Origin: Phaeosaccion multiseriatum
Taxonomy: Eukaryota > Protista > Ochrophyta, other classes
Direction: 5' to 3'
NCBI GenBank assembly: GCA_965112735.1
Contig: OZ218952.1
Location: 682,001-746,000, forward strand
DNA: 64,000 bases
This document shows positions 5,564 to 40,962 of the stretch, one piece after another. A model generated the notes under the pieces. That model was given only the letters and a program-made list of their open reading frames with translations. It did not search any database and was not told the DNA's origin. Each line of letters opens with the position of its first letter. Position 1 is the stretch's first letter. The position numbers and the translations under genes are program-made.

Positions 5564-6589
5564 GAAGCAGGCTGCAAACCCCAGAGCCAGTACGATGGAT
5601 GTACGCGTAGTTGGGTATCCACCAGTACCCACCGGTACCCATCCCATCCACTGCCATCCCATCCCGGCAGCGTGCCGTGTTCCTCCTGCATGTCTCACCG
5701 ATTGAAGCCCGTTTCGTACAGTTGCCGCCAGCCCTGCATGCGCTGTTCCTCCTGAATACGCTCCTCCTGCTCCTGTTGGTGCTTCAGCCCCTCCAGATAC
5801 ACGTCTGTGGCGGTCTTGGTGAGCGTGTTGGCCTTCTCCTTCCGCCGCCCCTTGGGAAGTTGGTGATACGGGTACTGCTGCGGCTGCTGCTGCTGCTGCC
5901 TAATGTGGGAGGAGGGTAGCTGCCCGAATGTCAGCTGTTTCGTCGCCGCTTGCTCCTGCTGCTGCTGCCGCTGCTGCTGCTGTTGATGGGCTGTCGGTGC
6001 CACCCCAACCGCAGGGGGCATGTGCGGGTGCTGAGAGGTGGAGGGGCCCACGGAATGAGCAGTGCTCCCCCCGCCACCGCCACCGCCAGAAGCAGCAGCA
6101 GATGCATTTTGCTCCCCTGCCCTCCTCCTCTTTGCACCCATTGCCCCTCCTCCCCTGTCTGTGAGTGCCATGGAGCCTGCAGCACTCGCCTCCGGCCCCT
6201 CCGCCTGCTGGTGTAGCGCTCCGATGTCTTCTCCGTACGAGGATACGACTGCTACATCACCAAGTACGGCTGTATCATCAACTGCTGGTGCCACCAACGC
6301 CCCTCCATCATCAGTGGCGGCACCTCGAAGCTTTTCTTCCAGCTCTCTCTTCAACGCTGCGATTTTCCGTCTCTCCTTCAGATACTTTTCCCTCAGACGC
6401 CTTTTCTCCTCCTGCTGCTGCTTCTTCAGTCGAAGCTTCTCCTTGCGCAACAGCTCCGCCGTCTTGGTCACCCTCTCCTCCCTCTTGAGTAGGTCCTCCT
6501 TCCTCATGGCTAGGGCTTTCCCGGTCTCGCTGTTGTCTCTCCTACGTAGCGTCCCCTCATCCCGACCCCCTCCTCCTCTCGCCCGCCGT

Positions 6590-6626
<37 letters not shown>

Positions 6627-7656
6627 GCTGCTGCTGTATTGCTGGATCCTCCCCCAGGGGGGCTAAGTTGTCTTCGCTGGAGCCCATGCCGCTGCTATCC
6701 TCCGAAGAATTCGCGTTGGACTCTGTCTGAGGCACCACGATCTCTCGCTTGATATGCCTCTTCTTCCCCGCTGCTGCTGCTGCGGCTGCTGCGTCTAGCG
6801 GAGGCACGGTAGGCACCGACACCACAACGCCTGTCCCACCACCTTTGCCCCCCGGCGAGGAGGAGGAGGAGGAATGCGCGGCAGACTTGGACTTGTTTCT
6901 GTCTTTTCCGCCCGTTTCCTCACCCGTGACGCCTGCTACACCGTCCGCGGCGGCGGCACCGTGACCCTGACTCTGACCTTCCTGAGCCGGCCCCCCTGTC
7001 AGCTTTCGACTCGTGCCGCCCCGCGAGAGAAGATTCTTACGTGTGATGGAGCCTTTCAGCCACGCCGCCCCTCTGCTGAGGACCTCTCTCCTCTTCATTG
7101 CGTCCTCGTGCATCTGGGTAACGTCCCTGCTGAGAACCTTCGCCACTGCCCGGGCAGATACGGAGGGATCTTTGAGAGTCGCCAAGCCTGCATCCGCGAG
7201 CCCCTGCAAGAAGAGGTTAGTTGCCGACGGCAAGAGTCCTGCGATGATGTTAGCGGGACTGACGAGGGCGTCGATGGGGCGCCGGGTGGCCTCAGTCACA
7301 CACGCCAGAATCTTGATGAGAAAAACGAGCTTCTCTTTCTTGCTCAGGACGGCCGCTCCCTCCTTCCCCTTTTCCTTCTGCTGCTGCTGAGCGTCCTCGT
7401 TGTTTGCACGGCTCCCCCCCTCGATACCAGGCGTCTCTTGACTCTCGTCTCCACCCTGCTGCCTACGAAGGCCGCGGTCCCCATCGTATAGGCCCTTGCC
7501 GAAGCCAGTCTTATCCTCCACACTCTCGACGATGGCCCGTAAGTACTGGAAGGGCGGGCGACAGAGCAGCTTCGTGGATAGCTTCACATCGCTGCTGCTG
7601 GTAACTTCCTTCAGCGCTGACTTCGATTTGGCCGCCTGGACTTGAAGCGGGGGCAT
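2400..7656 (-). CDS. Large protein with an N-terminal IFT54/TRAF3IP1 (MIP-T3)-type calponin-homology domain, coiled coil, long Q/E/D-rich regions and a possible degenerate EF-hand region (exons 7656-5699, 5040-2400)
   Basis: KLSTKLLCRPPFQYLRAIV...TGFGKGLY, KLVFLIKI and NIIAGLLPSATNLFLQGLA match the IFT54 CH-domain pattern (KLLxKPPFRxLHDIV..TGF..GLY / IVAGxEPExTNxFLQxLA). Phase-2 intron 5698-5041 joins the two large ORFs in frame. The start codon is uncertain. Confidence 0.7.
5059..5563. repeat. Intronic microsatellites: (CAGT)n at about 5059-5338 and (CAA)n at about 5470-5563
   Basis: Directly visible tandem repeats inside intron 5041-5698. Confidence 0.95.
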
Positions 7657-7930
7657 TCTGGGCGAAGCGTGTGCGTCCACCCACTACTCTCTTCCTCTCC
7701 TCCTTCCCAACCTCTCCTGGCGAGTGACGACGGACATGTGGGCAAATGAAATTCACGATGTCTCCGAGGTCTTATCCAGCACTCTTAGGTCACTCAAAGC
7801 GCGGAATAGGTGATGCTACGTCTTCTTCTAGGCAGTAAGATGCAGCACGAGCGGTAGGAGGGGATAGGATGATGCTATATATTACAGATATATATACGGA
7901 TAGGATGAACGTTTCGTATGCCACCTGTGA

Positions 7931-10918: not shown

Positions 10919-11792
10919 TTACCGGGCAGACAGGCTTTTTTTGAACACCAAACTGATGCGCTGCTGCACGTCCTCCGCGGCGTCGGTCCTCTTCTCCACC
11001 TTTATGGTGTGTTGCCACTCCGCCTGACACTCGTTAAACATGTGCACACAGTCCCCGCTTCGCACGTAAAAGGAGTGTCGCACGCTGTGGTCGTTGTCTC
11101 TCCGCAAGATGAATTGCCTCGTCTCGCCCACCGACACAACATGGGTGTCCTGGGTCCAGCTCTCGCCCTGCCCCGGGTCGCTGTGAAAGCGCATGCCTGT
11201 CTTGCCGTCGCCATAGAGGTTGATGAGGACCCCGTCGTAGGCAATACCCAAGTCTCGCTCCACCTGCTCCGCGATACGGGCGACGATGGGGCTGAAGGGT
11301 AAGGGCTGCATGACCTTGCCACTGTACTCAAAGGGCAGCCCCGAGCAGCTCTGCCACGCAGTAAGGCGGCTCTCAGACACCACCTTCTGCCCGCCGTCGA
11401 GCTCGATCTCGTCCCGTTGGAAGAGGACTTCTTTCTTGAGGTCCTCGACATACACCCCGGGGAAAGCTCTCTGGTGGACCCGAAACGGTAACTCGGCCAA
11501 CGCACCCGTCATTAAGGGGAGAGCAAGAGCAGTAGAAGCAGCAGGAGCAGCAGCAGCAGGAGTAGACCCAATGCCTTCACCGTCATCCTCATCGCCACGC
11601 CCACTCCGCCCACCGCCCGTTCCACTCGTTGGAAGCAGCCCCAGGCTCTGCATGGCCCACACCACTGTGGACAGCTGCGAAGGGCTCAGCCGCCCCTCCC
11701 CTGTCTCCATCTCCTTCGCCCACTCTTGTTCCACAGTCATAGCCAGATACGTAGCACCAGCCAGTCCTTCTTTCCCCGCCTCCTCCTCCTCG

Positions 11793-11835
<43 letters not shown>

Positions 11836-12829
11836 CCCTGCCACTACCAGGCTCTGTTGTTGCTCTGCCGCCCACATCATCACCATCACCGCTGATAGTC
11901 AGAGCTGCATCTCGAGTTGTCGCAGCAACTGCTGCTGCCACGCCCCCCTCCTTCCTACCTCCACTTCTTGCAGATCTATCAGTGCCAAAGGCCGTGCAGT
12001 CACTGTCAGCGTCAGGGTCAAAGTCTGTGCTAGGGTGAAGTAGTGCCCACGCCAGGAGGAAATCCGTGATGTGACAGATGGTCTTGGCTGACAAAACACC
12101 GCCCTGCTTTGCACCACACTCCTGCTGCTTCTGAACCTCGCGGCACACGGCGCTCATGATGGCAGCGAGTCGGGCGTCTCTCTGAAGGAGGCGGCGCTCT
12201 TCTGCTCGCCCAACACCGACGACGGCCTGTGGTCATACCACATAGGGGCATGGAGAGCCATCAGAGGACATTGGTTGCACCGTATCGAGACGCGCATGGC
12301 GGAGGGAGGGCGGGGGGTGATTAGCGATTGCTCTTCTCCTGACCTGGGAGGCGGGTTGAGTAGCGGCTCTTCCTTCTCCTCCCAGTTGGGGGATTTCCTT
12401 CTCTTTTTTTCAGCTTACCTTCGCGCAGCGAAGAAGCGCAGCAGAGACATGTGCGATGCTCAGATGATCCAAGTTGTCGTAGGCAAGCGTGACAATATCT
12501 GCAGGAGCTGCGTACTGGAGAGCTTGTGGAGCCGCTGCGCTTCTCCTACCGCTGCTACTGCTGCTGCTGCGGCTCCTGCTGCTGCCGACCCTGGTCCTCT
12601 TCCTTCTACTGCTACTACTGCTAAAATCACTCGTCTTCCAGCCACTACTGTTCCTGCTCGTACTCCTTCCATAGACAGTATCCCTCGACAGAATAGAGGC
12701 GCTGGTGAAGGCATCACTTTGGAAAGGATTGAGCAGCAGAGAGAGCGTGAAGCACGGGACGAGGCGAATCCTCGCCCCCGCTCCAAGCCTATTGCCATTT
12801 CTTCTCCTCTTCCTCTTTGTTTTGATCAT
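10919..12829 (-). CDS. AlkB-family (ALKBH2/3-like) 2OG-Fe(II) dioxygenase with putative plastid presequence (exons 12829-12419, 12226-10919)
   Basis: SRLTAW..FEYSG..LINLY.DG..GMRFHSD..SVGETRQFILR..GD..M..Q..WQH.I..RISLVFK. Phase-0 intron 12418-12227. Hydrophobic segment ending in QSDA-F. Confidence 0.85.
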
Positions 12830-18310: not shown

Positions 18311-19758
18311 ATGAGTCTCCCCAAGTTCCATCATCGGGGCTCGTCCCCTGGGAGTGGCATTCACCACACGCTGCAGAAAGGCGTTACCGGCAACAACGTC
18401 AGCGGCAAAACGCTTGCCGGCGGTGGCCGGGGCAGGAGCAGCAGCAATGGCAACAGCTACTCGCTGTGGCAAGAGCAGCCGGGGAGTAGTGGAGGGGGGG
18501 GGTCGGTGTGCAAGACGTGGAAGGTCTTGCTCATCTTCTTGCTGGGTCTTTCAGTCTTTCTGACTTTGCTCATCCTGCTGGAGATGGAGGGCTTTAGTAG
18601 AGAAGGCTTTGGAAGCGGCTGCCTCCACAACCACCACTACCCAGGTAGAGGCAATGCTGCAGAATCAAGAGCAGGCTTGCCGTTCTGGGGCGACAATTCT
18701 CGTGGGGGTGGCATGTCATCGAGTGGCGAGGTGCGAGGGACAGAGGGCAGCTTTGGGAGGGGGGTGGCGGCGGTGGGACATAAAACGACGGGGTTTGACA
18801 GCAGGAGCGGGAGTGGGCCCGCGGGGTGGTGGGGGGGCGCGGGGACAGGGGACGCTCTTTTGATGGAGCAAGTCGAAGTGGTAGATCGGTTGGTACCGAA
18901 GGCCGCGAGTGATATGTGCAGACAGGCAGCTACGACGGTGTTTGGGTCGGCGAATAACCTTGGAGAGCTCTTTGCCCTGCGGCACCGCAGAGTGATGGAG
19001 CTGGACGGGTACCGGGAGGGCATCTACTTTATCACGGCCAATCTGCACAACAACGCTGAGGTGTTCCCCTCTTGGCAACGGGAGCTCCTTAAGCTCGTGC
19101 TTATGCTCGAAGACACGTACTCTACCAATGTGTTTGTGTCCATATACGAGAGTGGGAGCACCGACGACACCCCTCGCTATCTACAGAACCTCGAGGAGCA
19201 GCTGAGGATACTGCAGGTGTGTGTGCGTGCGCGCGTGTGTGGTGTGTATATGTTTGTGTTGGCATGGAATGAGGGGGTGCTGGCCTTCCCCTTTCCCCTA
19301 CAAAGCACACAGAGCAATGTATGCTGCCGTTAACCCCTTTGGCAGTGCGTACATTGGATGGTAACTCATCACACACCACATGTAATTGTCGTACCAACGA
19401 AACACAACGAAGCACACCAGCATCTCCTAACTCCCGCCCCCACCCCACGCCCCCCACGCACCGCAGATTCCCCACGCCATCGCCACTACTCAGCTGAAGC
19501 GCAAGCAGGGAGAGGAGCGCATCCCGTTCCTGGCCTCTATGCGCAACAAGGCTCTGGAGCCGCTCTTCGACTCCAAAATAACATACGACCAAGTACTCTT
19601 CCTCAACGACGTTTACTTTTGCGCGGAGGATATGTTATCTCTAGTTTACCAGACCAACCCACACTACCACCTACAGCAGCAGCAGCAGCGGCGGCACCAG
19701 CAGCATCAGCAGCACACGTCCTTCGGGGCACCCGCAGCACCCGCAGCACCACCACCAC

Positions 19759-19797
<39 letters not shown>

Positions 19798-22700
19798 GGG
19801 CAGCGGCAGGAGGGGCAGCGGCCGGGGACGGGAGAGACGAGAGGGTTGGTGGTGGTGGCGGCGGCGGTGGTGATGGTGAAGCGGTGCCAGCAGGGGCAGA
19901 CATGGCGTGCTCCACAGACTGGATAGGCAAGAAGCCGGACTGTCCTGAGTGCGCTGACTATCGGCTCTACGACATTTGGGTGGGCGTGGACAAGAACGGG
20001 AGAAAGTTCCTCAACGAACCACCCTATCTGGAGGACGAGGAGTCCGCGCTGGCATTGCAGCAGGGAGTGCCCTTCGAGGTGTTCTCTTGCTGGAACGGAA
20101 TGGTAAGAGAGGGGAGTGGCATACACATAGCAAAGGCTGTGGATGGAGGTCTATCCTCTGTACGTCGCTCGTTCTTTTGGGCAGCCCCCCCCCACACACA
20201 CGCCCTCTCCCTGCTGCCTCTGTTGCTCTTTCCCCCTAATGCTTGTGATTCTCTATGCAGCAAGCAAACCACGCGCTCCTCATTGATTTCGACGCGTTTT
20301 TCTCGGCCCTAAGCGAGTACCCCCTCCCCCCCCCTTTCCTCCCTTTTTCTCTCTCTTCAACGCCAGGTGAGCATCGACGCGGATGTGTTTCAACGCGACT
20401 TACTGCGCCTCCGGGCAGGCAGAGAGGGCATTGAATGCGCCGCCTCCGAGTGCGAGCTCCTCTCGCGGGACTTGTGGGAAATCGGTCGGGGAAGGATCGT
20501 CGTGGTGCCCTCGGCAGTCGTCGCCTACGACCTTGACGTGTTTGTGAATGTACCTCGGCCCCCGCCTGTCAGCCAGCTCATGCTGCTGCCGAGCTTTGAA
20601 ATGCCGTACCCCACCCGGCTGGTGTGCTGCCCATTGCCCAAGGGGAAGGACTCGTACGACACATGCTTTGACGACACGGTGTGGAGGGCGGTGTACGCCA
20701 TGGACGGTGTGCCTCGGGCGCTGTCAGCCGGAGGGGGTGGTATCAGCGGGGGGGTGGGGGGAGCTGTGGCAGCGGTAGGCCTCGGAAGTCTCGGAGGAGG
20801 ACTAGCAGGAGGAGGAGGAGGTGGTGGTGGTGGTGGTGGTGGTGGTGGCGGAGTTGCTGGGGCAGGGCAGGATCATGTGCTTTCCATCATGCTGTCTACT
20901 GAGGAGGTGGGTGGCAGGCAGAGCAAAACGTTTGAAGACCTGGCGCGGGGACTGAAGGAGGAGGGCCTGTGTACGGAGGAAGAGAAGGCGCGTTTGGCAT
21001 CGTACGCCATCCCTGCTCGAATCATGCAGAGCGGCAAGACGAACCTGCTGACAGCCTACTCGTTTGAGGTGATGCAAGGCCCCCTGCACTGGATGCATTT
21101 GCACCCCTGCCACGAGTATGTCTTTCTGGACGATGACCGTATCTTGACTTTCCTGGAGAAGCGCTATCCTCAGTTCTTGCCGGTGGTCGACGTCATCTCT
21201 AACGGAGCAGAGCTGGCGGACTTTGCGCGCTACCTCTTTATGTATGACATGGGGGGCGTGTATGCCGACCTGGACACCAAGCCGCTGCTACCCATGCACA
21301 GCATCTTCTCCCCCACGGACCGCTTTGTGGTGGGGCTGGAGAGCGATTTCCTCTCGGAGGAAACGGCGAAAGCCTGGGCCTATTCCCGAGCCAGGTCCCT
21401 GTCGCTCCACGCCTTTGCAGCAGCGCCCAAGACGCCAGTCATGTGGAGCGTTGTGGAGAGGGTGGCGGGGAGTCTGCAAGACCCCACGGGCGTGTATCAG
21501 GAGATTCACGCTCGGGCCGTGGGGGCCTGCCATCACCTCGAGACCATCCTTAAGACGGGACCGGGTGCGTTTACGGACGTGGTGTTGGCGTACAAGGCCG
21601 GCTTGGAGGCGGAGGTCGAGGCTGCGAAGGTGGTGGCAGTGGATGTGGCTTTGAGAGTAGAGGCAGAGGATGCGGCGAAGGAGGTTGCAGTACATGTAGT
21701 AGACTCAGTCAAGTCGGAAGAGGCAGGAGGTGGTGGTGGAGGAGGAGGAGGAGAGGGGGTGGAGGCACGGCAACCCGGTGACGAGCAGCAGCAGCAAAAG
21801 GAACGGGAGAAGTGGCGAGATCAGCTCAAGCGCGAGCGGGTGCAGCAGGAGCAGCGCTTAGCGGAGAGGCAAGCGGCCAGCAATGCCGTGAAGGTGTTGG
21901 GCATACCCTCCTTCTCATCCGCCAACTCCAATGGCGACAACTTTTACCGCCTGCAGCGACGAGAGGCTCTCGAAGGGTGGCCGAGCTATGTGGAGCACTT
22001 TAACTTGGGCACTTGGCTGCGTTCGTGTAACGGCAACGCCATGGAGGGCATCCGTTACGACTACATTCCCTTGGGCGGCTTCATGTTCAAAAAGCAGTGG
22101 ATGGCAATGCATGCCAAGGCCGCCACCTGGACCCACCCGCCGCTGTATGTTTATCCACCCCTGTCCACGCCGGTGGCGGTGGGAGGTAGACCTGGCGGAG
22201 GGCAGGTAGCGAAGGAGGAGGAGCCCTTTTTGTTTCTGGAGATGACCAGCGAGGGAGTGGTGAAGGCGAGCCGGGGGTTGGGACCGATGGACTTGAACGC
22301 AGAGGAGTTGTGGAGACTGCCTTCCTCCTCCTCCCCCTCGTCCTCCTCCTCCTCCTCCGCAAATGCAGCAGGTGGGCTGGCGGCAGCAGCAGCAGCAGCG
22401 TTCAATACAGAGACGAGGATGAGTAGGCTGATGAAGGCCAAGAAGGGCATCAATGCGGCGGCAGCGGCCCTAGCAGAGGGCGTTAGCGGCTTGGGTATCG
22501 GCGGCTTGTTGGGGTCCGGGGCGGAAGAGCAAAGCCAGGGGGTGGCGTTCAACCTTCAGGGAGACGGAAACCTCGTCATGCATGCCTACGACGAACGCAA
22601 GGGGGACGATTTTTGGAGAGAGGGCAACTGTAATGAGCGCATCACCAGCGGCCGGGTCACGTGGGCTGCGGGGTACGTCTCCCCATGGTCGGGCGGTTGC

Positions 22701-23444
22701 TTCTTTACCATTCTGCGTCCGGATGGGCGGCTGGCCATGTACGCAGGGCGAAGTCCCGAAGAGGTGCCTAGGCTGGGCGACAGACTCGTTTGGTGGCAGG
22801 GGGGGTGCGATGTGAGAAAGGCAGACGAGCTCGAGCCAGGAGACTGGCTTGTGCCGGGCACCTTCCTCTTCCAGGCAGCTGCGGGAGAGGGGGAGGAGGA
22901 GGGGGTGGGAAGGGGTAGTGAGAGTTTGGCGCTGTATCAGCACCAGCAAGGCCCCCTGTGCGCCTACCGCGGTTACAGAAAAGAGGACTTTGACGGGAAA
23001 GGGCTCACTGCCGTCCAGCCCGTTGATCCTGGCGCAGCAGGGGCAGCAGTAGCAGCAGCAGCAGCAGCAGAAGCAGCAGCAGGGGCAGGAGCAGCAGCAG
23101 CAGGGGCAGGAGCAGGGGTATCACCGATTCCGTTTTGGTGCAACCTTGACCCCGCACGGAAGAACACAAGACCGGGCAAGTACTTTACAATGCTGCAGCT
23201 GGATGGGAACGTGTGCACCTATCGAGGCAACGGGCCCCACGACCCCTCCAACTCGGCAAGGTGGTGCTCGTACAAAGTCGTACCGCCGTCGCTACAGGAG
23301 CAGCAGGAGGACGAGGAGGAGGGTGAGAGGGCTTTCCACAAGCTGGTGTTGACCGCCGACCCGGAGCCTCAACTGCAGTGGCTGGACCAGGCAGGCAGGG
23401 TGCGGTATTCGATGCTTCTAGACGAGGCCGCTGCTCGATGGTAG
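18311..23444 (+). CDS. Type II membrane multidomain glycosyltransferase: CAP59/GT69 domain + GT32 (DXD) domain + C-terminal bulb-type lectin-like repeats (exons 18311-19216, 19467-20102, 20367-23444)
   Basis: TM helix VLLIFLLGLSVFLTLLILL. GT69 motifs: ANLHNN, VFVSIYESGSTD, RIPFLASMRNKALEPL, FLNDVYFC, YDIWV, VFSCWNG, ASECELL..DLW. GT32 motifs: IPARIMQ, W..LHP..EY, ADFARYLFMYDMGGVYADLD, KTGPGAFT. Lectin motifs: LQGDGNLV, LQLDGNVCTY. Confidence 0.85.
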
Positions 23445-30060: not shown

Positions 30061-31002
30061 CTACCCCGACGGGAAGTCGTAGATTTGTTTCTCGAAGCTC
30101 CTTCTGCCGTCGGCCTTTCGCGGCACCGTCTCGTCGCCCCCCACAACGGTCGTACGGTGTAAGATACGCACCCCGACCTCCGCAGCCCTCTTTTGCGTGC
30201 CCAGGCACGCGTAGTGTGCCAAGCCCAAGTTGTCTGTAATGAGGAAGTCGCCCGCCTGCCACTTCATCTTGAGGCCAATGGCGTCCATACGAGCTTCGAT
30301 GGCTTGCGTGATCTCTTGCTGAATGAGAGCGGAGGGCAGCATCTTGGCCGAGGGGTCGTCCACAGAGACGGTTTCGGTTTCTTCGATCCATCCGTCCACA
30401 AAGGGCTCGCCGCAGTGGAATACGAGTGTCGGCTCCTCCTCGTCGTCGTCCTCTCCTCGTCGATACGGGTGGCTGCAGACCAATGGATGGACCCGAGCCC
30501 CCTCCCTCCCCCCCCGCCTACTGGCCGTCACCATCCACAATCGGTCCCAGCGACTCCTTTGCTCGTTCGGCAAGCTCTCGTACAGCTCTTTCAAGGGCAC
30601 AAAGTACGTGTCGCCACCTTCAATGACGGAGGGGAAGAACATGGTCTGGAAGGCGAACGGTGTCGCCACGAACGTCCCGTCGATGTGCCATCCGCTCCGC
30701 CCGACGTTGCGGCATCCCTCTTCCTCCACATTGCTCACCCGGAAGATGTCGGGATGCGGCGACTTGGGATGCTTGTAGAAGGTGCTTTCTACTCGGCCCA
30801 GATGCTTTGAGATCTCCACCTGCTGCTCCCCAGTCAAGTCTTGCCCGCGGAAGAGCAGTGCTCGTTCTCTCCGTACGTCGGCCTTGAGCTTGGTCATGAA
30901 GGCGGGATCCCGCAGCACCCCAGGAAGAGACAGGTCCACACCAGTCGCCTCCGCACCGAAGCACGTTGTGAGCGGACGAAGAGTGTAGCTGAAGCCCAAC
31001 AT
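30061..31002 (-). CDS. TauD/TfdA-family alpha-ketoglutarate-dependent dioxygenase, intronless
   Basis: LRPL...FGAEATGVDL, LLFRGQDLT.EQQ, GWHIDGTF (HxD), GGDTYF, VHPLV..HP, WQAGDFLITDN...AH, RILHRTTV. First ATG at 31002. Confidence 0.88.
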   Translation of the reverse strand: MLGFSYTLRPLTTCFGAEATGVDLSLPGVLRDPAFMTKLKADVRRERALLFRGQDLTGEQQVEISKHLGRVESTFYKHPKSPHPDIFRVSNVEEEGCRNVGRSGWHIDGTFVATPFAFQTMFFPSVIEGGDTYFVPLKELYESLPNEQRSRWDRLWMVTASRRGGREGARVHPLVCSHPYRRGEDDDEEEPTLVFHCGEPFVDGWIEETETVSVDDPSAKMLPSALIQQEITQAIEARMDAIGLKMKWQAGDFLITDNLGLAHYACLGTQKRAAEVGVRILHRTTVVGGDETVPRKADGRRSFEKQIYDFPSG

Positions 31003-31147
31003 CCTCTCTCGTATCTCTTCTCTTTTTTTTTCTATCCATCTTTCTCTCTCGTTTCTCTCAGAATTACTTTTGAACCATCCCTTCCCTTCTGATAAATCCC
31101 CTTCTCTTCCAAGGTTATACTCGATTTTACTCGTACTCCTGCTTACG

Positions 31148-40962
<9,815 letters not shown>

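Follow-up and report, generated by a model that had tools for sequence, protein, structure and literature searches.

Glycosyltransferases (GTs) of the Golgi usually adopt a type II signal-anchor layout. In the ppGalNAc-transferases, a ricin-type lectin directs the catalytic domain to already glycosylated substrates, and in the LARGE and EXT enzymes two GT domains per chain build a repeating polymer. Lectins of the GNA type typically bind mannose. CAZy classes GT69 and GT32 as retaining families, and GT32 also includes galactose (Gal) and N-acetylglucosamine (GlcNAc) transferases. Within GT69, Cmt1, Cap59 and Cap6 are alpha-1,3-mannosyltransferases, and within GT32, which has a GT-A fold, Och1, Hoc1 and Csg1 are alpha-1,6- or inositol phosphorylceramide (IPC) alpha-1,2-mannosyltransferases (PMC12493134). 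Here we analyze a gene in a 64,000-nucleotide stretch of contig OZ218952.1 from the ochrophyte Phaeosaccion multiseriatum (assembly GCA_965112735.1, forward strand, positions 682,001 to 746,000), hereafter called the window, whose first letter is position 1. The gene lies at 18311-23444 on the plus strand, as do all of its parts described below, and is predicted to encode one membrane-anchored chain in which a GT69 domain and a GT32 domain are followed by two tandem bulb-type lectin domains. We consider it probable that this protein is a type II Golgi enzyme that adds two alpha-linked sugars in succession to the same glycan, with its lectin tail acting in cis.

Inspection of the plus strand across 18311-23444 reveals three long open frames with clean joins, and splicing yields three exons, two introns and a 1539-residue product with a single terminal stop. 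Exon 1 (18311-19216, residues 1-302) encodes the cytosolic tail, the signal anchor, a poorly conserved stem and the start of the GT69 domain, and it ends in CTGCAG followed by the donor gtgtgt. Intron 1 (19217-19466) is a GT..AG intron of 250 nucleotides in phase 0, which starts with GTGTGT and ends in caccgcag. Exon 2 (19467-20102, residues 303-514) holds the GT69 core together with an 80-residue low-complexity insert, and the second intron that follows it (20103-20366) is again a GT..AG intron in phase 0, here of 264 nucleotides, starting with GTAAGA and ending in acgccag. Exon 3 (20367-23444, residues 515-1539 and the stop) is an open frame of 1025 codons containing the end of the GT69 domain, a linker with conserved Cys, the GT32 domain and the two lectin domains. 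GC content at third codon positions (GC3) is 0.71-0.79 in all conserved coding segments versus 0.54-0.55 in both introns, with intron 1 at 0.54. An earlier note on this DNA, made from the letters and their open reading frames (ORFs), had proposed two clean phase-0 introns and a product of about 1540 residues; the spliced model agrees with it on both counts, and the positions that it gave for YADLD (21261), LQGDGNLVMH (22554) and LQLDGNVCTYRG (23193) are exact.

Comparison with related proteins supports, at the level of sequence, the reading of the GT69, GT32 and tandem lectin modules as one polypeptide. A homologue search with the entire exon-3 product came back empty, low-complexity words having swamped the candidates, and the GT32 core was used instead. 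This search returned five proteins of 881-1232 amino acids that carry both PF11735 and PF04488, and a profile search added five further relatives, for a total of ten. Named relatives are Cymbomonas tetramitiformis CYMTET_47687, Chlamydomonas incerta HXX76_015785 and Edaphochlamys debaryana HYH03_018362, and several others come from marine or environmental assemblies. All ten align colinearly with the spliced product along its length, from signal anchor to tail, and their alignment crosses both exon junctions without a gap, with LRILQ/IPHAI at junction 1 and SCWNGM/VSIDADVF at junction 2 against SCWNGMVVMNANLF in the relatives. The sources of P0002 (a TARA metagenome scaffold), P0005 (GCA_013565615.1), P0098 and P0004 each encode the relative as an uninterrupted single ORF on its contig, so that no splicing is needed for a single chain in these cases. 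The single-chain architecture claimed in the earlier note therefore finds its counterpart in ten colinear relatives, several of them uninterrupted. In a tree of the GT69 domain, all fusion proteins fall into one group of 17 rows with support of 92/93; this group also holds a few proteins annotated as GT69 only, and an exclusive fusion clade is unresolved inside it.

The N-terminal part of the protein is consistent with the type II topology suggested beforehand. One strong hydrophobic segment, the putative transmembrane signal anchor VLLIFLLGLSVFLTLLILL (18524-18580, residues 72-90), has a Kyte-Doolittle mean of 3.11 over its 19 residues, and the next best segment in the chain reaches 1.79. A 71-residue N-terminal tail precedes the anchor, and relatives have an N-terminal hydrophobic segment at the matching place.

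Both catalytic modules named in the earlier note are recovered by Pfam well above threshold. The GT69 (CAP59/Cmt1-like) domain (19019-20624, residues ~237-600) is interrupted by both introns, and PF11735 CAP59_mtransfer matches it on exon 1 (5.7e-12, 46.2 bits, residues 239-300) and on exon 2 (1e-33, 117.4 bits), where the cut-off is 28.8 bits. Residues of this domain that are invariant in the fusion family are kept, including E258, D285, N349-D350, D447, D453, D471, E537, E542 and D549, and the only departure from the GT69-region columns invariant in the ten relatives is a change of F to L at residue 529. No solved GT69 structure came up when the GT69 exon was searched against PDB sequences, and the matches to fatty acid synthase and FAM155A were rejected as low-complexity artifacts. 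The GT32 domain (21006-22019, residues ~728-1065) is matched on exon 3 by PF04488 Gly_transf_sug (2.5e-13, 51 bits, cut-off 23). Its DXD motif, YADLD (21261-21275), includes D815-L-D817, and both Asp residues are invariant across the window protein and the ten relatives. The closest solved structure is the Och1 initiation-specific alpha-1,6-mannosyltransferase (9n3s_A, E 3.1e-8), with similarity limited to about 80 residues around the DXD. The domain closes with the motif H-x-N-x-G-[ST]-W at residue 1058 (HFNLGTW), and the first lectin domain begins right after it. Alignment columns invariant in the ten relatives number 87, of which the window protein retains 81, and with this degree of retention both GT domains are likely to be active.

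RNA evidence for the splicing of this gene was sought in public sequencing runs. Four runs hold the locus, all from one study and all as DNA contigs; that they are DNA follows from the presence of both introns in their contigs, which makes them silent on splicing. These contigs break only at simple repeats. The missing transcript evidence, together with the long low-complexity inserts carried in frame, could be taken to mean that the gene model is a false join of two or three neighboring genes, or a pseudogene read through. We regard this as highly improbable, given that the frame is continuous, that both junctions are exact against the relatives, that the module order is identical in uninterrupted ORFs elsewhere, that GC3 in the conserved segments differs from that of the introns as given above, and that so large a share of the invariant residues is kept.

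Beyond the GT32 domain, the predicted structure and sensitive profile comparisons indicate that the tail consists of a tandem pair of bulb-type lectin domains with the beta-prism II fold, despite the silence of Pfam. Domain 1 spans 22056-22811 (residues 1078-1329) and domain 2 spans 22818-23426 (residues 1332-1534). When residues 1066-1539 were searched by phmmer against a set of 1.84 billion representative proteins, 90 matches were obtained at E<=1e-3, the best at 4e-17, and PF01453 B_lectin is carried by eight of the ten matches that were scanned. The matches to B_lectin proteins center on domain 2, and a single unit (YFTMLQLDGNVCTYRGNGP...W), matching each lectin sub-domain in turn, accounts for most of the signal. 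For domain 1, a profile built from the glycosyltransferase family only was compared by hhalign with a profile of true B-lectins, giving a probability of 97.8% at E 8.3e-13; the 104 aligned columns cover each of the three sub-units of the domain. The same kind of family-only profile run against PDB sequences placed monocot-type (B-) lectins at 21 of its 22 top matches, at E-values of only 0.004-0.3.

Structural models were then compared with known folds. The AlphaFold model of the whole tail has a mean predicted local distance difference test (pLDDT) score of 58.7, a low value that is due to the long low-complexity loops. Plain Foldseek on this 474-residue model returned weak E-values, the loops being long, and the fold was resolved by VIA-align after loop trimming. 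Domain 1 (model residues 13-264) superposes on garlic lectin 1kj1_D with a Z of 12.0 and a root-mean-square deviation (rmsd) of 2.4 Å over 102 of 109 residues. Domain 2, when folded alone, reaches a pLDDT of 69.8 and superposes on gastrodianin 1xd6 with a Z of 12.5 and an rmsd of 2.7 Å over 110 of 110 residues. In the fold-match lists of both domains, B-lectins fill the top 32-33 rows, and below them Z drops to ~3.3-3.5. The beta-prism II fold that had been expected for the C-terminus is thus what the models give, at Z 12.0 and 12.5, while the three Pfam domains expected for the protein appear only in part: CAP59_mtransfer and Gly_transf_sug are present, and B_lectin has no match at E<=10. Because Pfam B_lectin fails on the tail, the lectin assignment rests on methods more sensitive than Pfam. 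Separately, a match of the tail to FAP42_B3 in the Pfam/NCBIfam search was below threshold (E 0.015-0.055) and was discarded as noise.

The number of lectin domains varies across the family. Two are present in the window protein, P0001, P0002, P0098 and P0126, and the chains of P0004 and P0005 stop after a single one. In the chlorophytes of the family (Cymbomonas, C. incerta and Edaphochlamys), Cys-rich modules come after one lectin domain and take the place of the second. Such modules are seen at residues ~950-1161 of P0003 and at the C-termini of P0099 and P0101, and those of Cymbomonas give weak PAN_1/PAN_4 matches that stay below threshold (E 0.0016-0.004).

Inspection of the six lectin sub-units for the mannose-site pattern QxDxNxVxY gives a mixed picture. 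The strict pattern occurs in 0 of 6 sub-units, and 2 of 6 are one substitution off, against 0.03 expected in the shuffled protein. The first of these near-canonical putative sugar sites, I-2 (QGDGNLVMH, 22557-22583), has H in place of Y, and relatives P0003 and P0004 have the strict pattern at the homologous unit. The second, II-2 (QLDGNVCTY, 23196-23222), has C in place of V, and the form Q-x-D-x-N/S-x-V/C-x-Y is found at this site in 5 of 5 two-domain family members. The repeats listed in the earlier note are lectin units apart from DELEPGDWL, which is the N-terminal strand of lectin domain 2, and a sixth unit absent from its list, LVLTADPEPQLQWLD, lies at 23343-23387. Sugar binding by the window protein is plausible but not assured, and sequence does not fix its specificity. 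The other four units have clearly degenerated, no site can be recognized in P0005, P0099, P0101 or P0102, and S-receptor kinase and neoculin stand among the fold matches of the lectin domains. These observations would suit domains that keep the lectin fold and no longer bind sugar, with a structural, oligomerization or protein-recognition role such as that of the S-locus receptor kinases or neoculin. We consider this loss of binding rather unlikely, since two sites only one substitution from canonical far exceed chance, II-2 persists throughout the two-domain members and two relatives carry I-2 in strictly canonical form.

The window protein is further set apart by five in-frame low-complexity inserts that consist of trinucleotide repeats and are absent from all ten relatives. 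An insert of 80 residues rich in Q/A/G/P (19656-19895) sits inside the GT69 domain, and an in-frame poly-Gly insert of trinucleotide repeats lies at 20721-20870. The GT32 domain contains a charged insert of 93 residues made up of E/A/V/K/Q (21600-21878). In the tail, an S/A-rich loop of 78 residues (22305-22538) interrupts lectin domain 1 and an Ala/Gly loop of 37 residues (23010-23120) interrupts lectin domain 2. These inserts are also places at which the public DNA contigs break off or pile up, with very high word depth at 22137-22530.

Taken as a Golgi enzyme with two successive activities, the protein would work as follows. Its lumenal part strings together four folded modules, namely GT69, GT32 of the Och1/Csg1-like kind and two beta-prism II lectins. 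It would sit in the Golgi, where each GT domain would add one alpha-linked sugar to the same glycan and the tail would keep the enzyme bound in cis to that glycan, whether as substrate or as product. Such a tail may serve either to target the enzyme to already-glycosylated acceptors or to retain it on the growing chain. The target itself may be a wall polymer, a glycoprotein or a glycolipid. Two alpha-linked transfers are the most likely outcome because both GT families are retaining and the family-invariant acidic residues are kept. By analogy, mannose would be the most likely sugar, since mannosyltransferases account for the characterized members of GT69 and for most fungal members of GT32, and mannose is the typical ligand of GNA-type lectins. 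Of all the steps in the argument this one is the weakest, and the choice of mannose no more than plausible, because GT32 also includes Gal and GlcNAc transferases. The mannan product and the wall or mucilage role suggested in the earlier note are possibilities only.

Several points weigh against this assignment. Pfam PF01453 B_lectin is unmatched on the window tail or on pieces of it, even at E<=10, and is also unmatched on the tails of nine relatives. The input alignments for AlphaFold held true B-lectins, which may bias the models toward beta-prism II; the phmmer and hhalign tests are free of this bias. No strictly canonical mannose site exists among the six sub-units. The donor sugar and linkage are not readable from membership of GT32, a family of Man, Gal and GlcNAc transferases. 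The five inserts, unlike anything in the relatives, may or may not be translated. Lastly, the public runs with the locus are DNA contigs that include the introns.

A more ambitious possibility is processive co-polymerization of the kind carried out by LARGE and by the two-domain glycosaminoglycan synthases of bacteria. The two GT domains would then take turns in extending a polymer of disaccharide repeats, such as a mixed-linkage alpha-mannan, with processivity conferred by the lectin. Two unlike GT domains and a product-binding module on one chain would fit such a scheme, as would the conservation of the fusion across distant algae. We hold it to be doubtful nonetheless: sequence cannot tell polymerization from two single additions and is compatible alike with either, and no polymer is known for the source organism. 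Extended to the family as a whole, this idea would describe a conserved algal Golgi family in which GT69 and GT32 alternate in polymerizing a mixed-linkage, alpha-mannan-type polymer of wall, scale or mucilage, and in which the cryptic tandem lectin is an in-cis processivity clamp. We put this forward as a speculative extension that we would not expect to hold. If true, it would provide the first bulb-lectin fold serving as the carbohydrate-binding module of a eukaryotic glycosyltransferase and the founding example of algal Golgi 'glycan assembly-line' enzymes.

The surroundings of the gene give no sign of a gene cluster for glycan synthesis among the neighboring window genes listed. A MIP-T3 (IFT54) CH-like ORF on the minus strand (5695-7680, Pfam 1.5e-17) encodes an intraflagellar-transport protein, and from its sequence the source organism probably builds a flagellum. 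Also on the minus strand are a 2OG-Fe(II) oxygenase ORF (10919-12157, 2.2e-15) and a TauD-family dioxygenase ORF (30061-31302, 9.4e-30), and an M16 peptidase ORF identified by a domain match lies on the plus strand (32133-34109).

A full-text literature search found no paper on a GT69+GT32 fusion or on a glycosyltransferase with a bulb-lectin domain. The suggestion that this architecture had not been described therefore stands for the literature, whereas public databases already hold it in green algae and marine metagenomes. There, the relatives are unnamed or 'hypothetical', except for one JGI record auto-named alpha-1,3-mannosyltransferase, and their precomputed annotation amounts to the two GT domains only. 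In the ESM Atlas, no large cluster with the GT69 + GT32 + lectin architecture was found. The same resource shows that GT32 (Gly_transf_sug) is often joined to a second GT domain: its partner is Anp1 (GT62) in bacteria, and in giant viruses and phages it is GT2 or Glyco_transf_7C. Chains that combine GT32 with another GT domain are thus a recurrent theme. The enzymes behind the wall, scale and mucilage glycans that microalgae make are little known, and the present chain is a concrete candidate for one such pathway; it pairs a lectin tail with two GT families whose known roles lie mainly in fungal mannan and capsule synthesis. It also points to a widespread lectin domain that escapes standard annotation, Pfam being silent on ten tails of the GT69-GT32 family.

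Each module of the chain can be set beside a described system. The window protein shares with the Cryptococcus Cmt1/Cap59/Cap6 enzymes their predicted type II topology, Pfam scores far above threshold and the family-conserved acidic and Cys residues. In contrast to those fungal enzymes, which stand alone at ~450-600 amino acids, the GT69 domain here opens a chain of four modules and contains an insert of 80 residues. With the GT32 enzymes Och1, Hoc1 and Csg1 it has in common the Gly_transf_sug domain and the DXD motif, Och1 9n3s being its best solved relative, yet the window GT32 is fused on both sides and neither linkage nor donor follows from the likeness. The lectin tail resembles the tandem bulb lectins SCAfet (1dlp), LLPA (3m7h) and pyocin L1 (4le7) in having a pair of beta-prism II domains in succession, each made of three sub-units. 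Its models also cover the whole chains of single-domain lectins of the GNA, garlic lectin and gastrodianin kind, at Z 12 and an rmsd of 2.4-2.7 Å. Unlike known bulb lectins, the tail lies beyond Pfam B_lectin, has long disordered loop inserts and lacks any strict QxDxNxVxY site; those lectins are free or fused to toxins, whereas this one is attached to enzymes.

The best analogy for the tail comes from the ppGalNAc-transferases (GT27 with a ricin-type lectin), which are likewise Golgi type II glycosyltransferases with a C-terminal lectin in cis. They differ in GT family, in the beta-trefoil fold of the lectin and in having one catalytic domain, such that the resemblance is one of analogy, not homology. 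The window protein extends the 'catalytic plus lectin' design of mucin-type O-glycosylation to another lectin fold. For the catalytic half, the nearest parallels are LARGE1/2 (GT8+GT49) and EXT1/2 (GT47+GT64), in which a single type II chain carries two different GT domains that act on the same glycan. These enzymes belong to other GT families and have no lectin module, and their polymerase behavior is a feature that the window protein may or may not share. Both the modules and the design principles, whether two GT domains on one chain or a GT joined to a lectin, are known from these systems; what is new in the window protein is their combination and the cryptic lectin.

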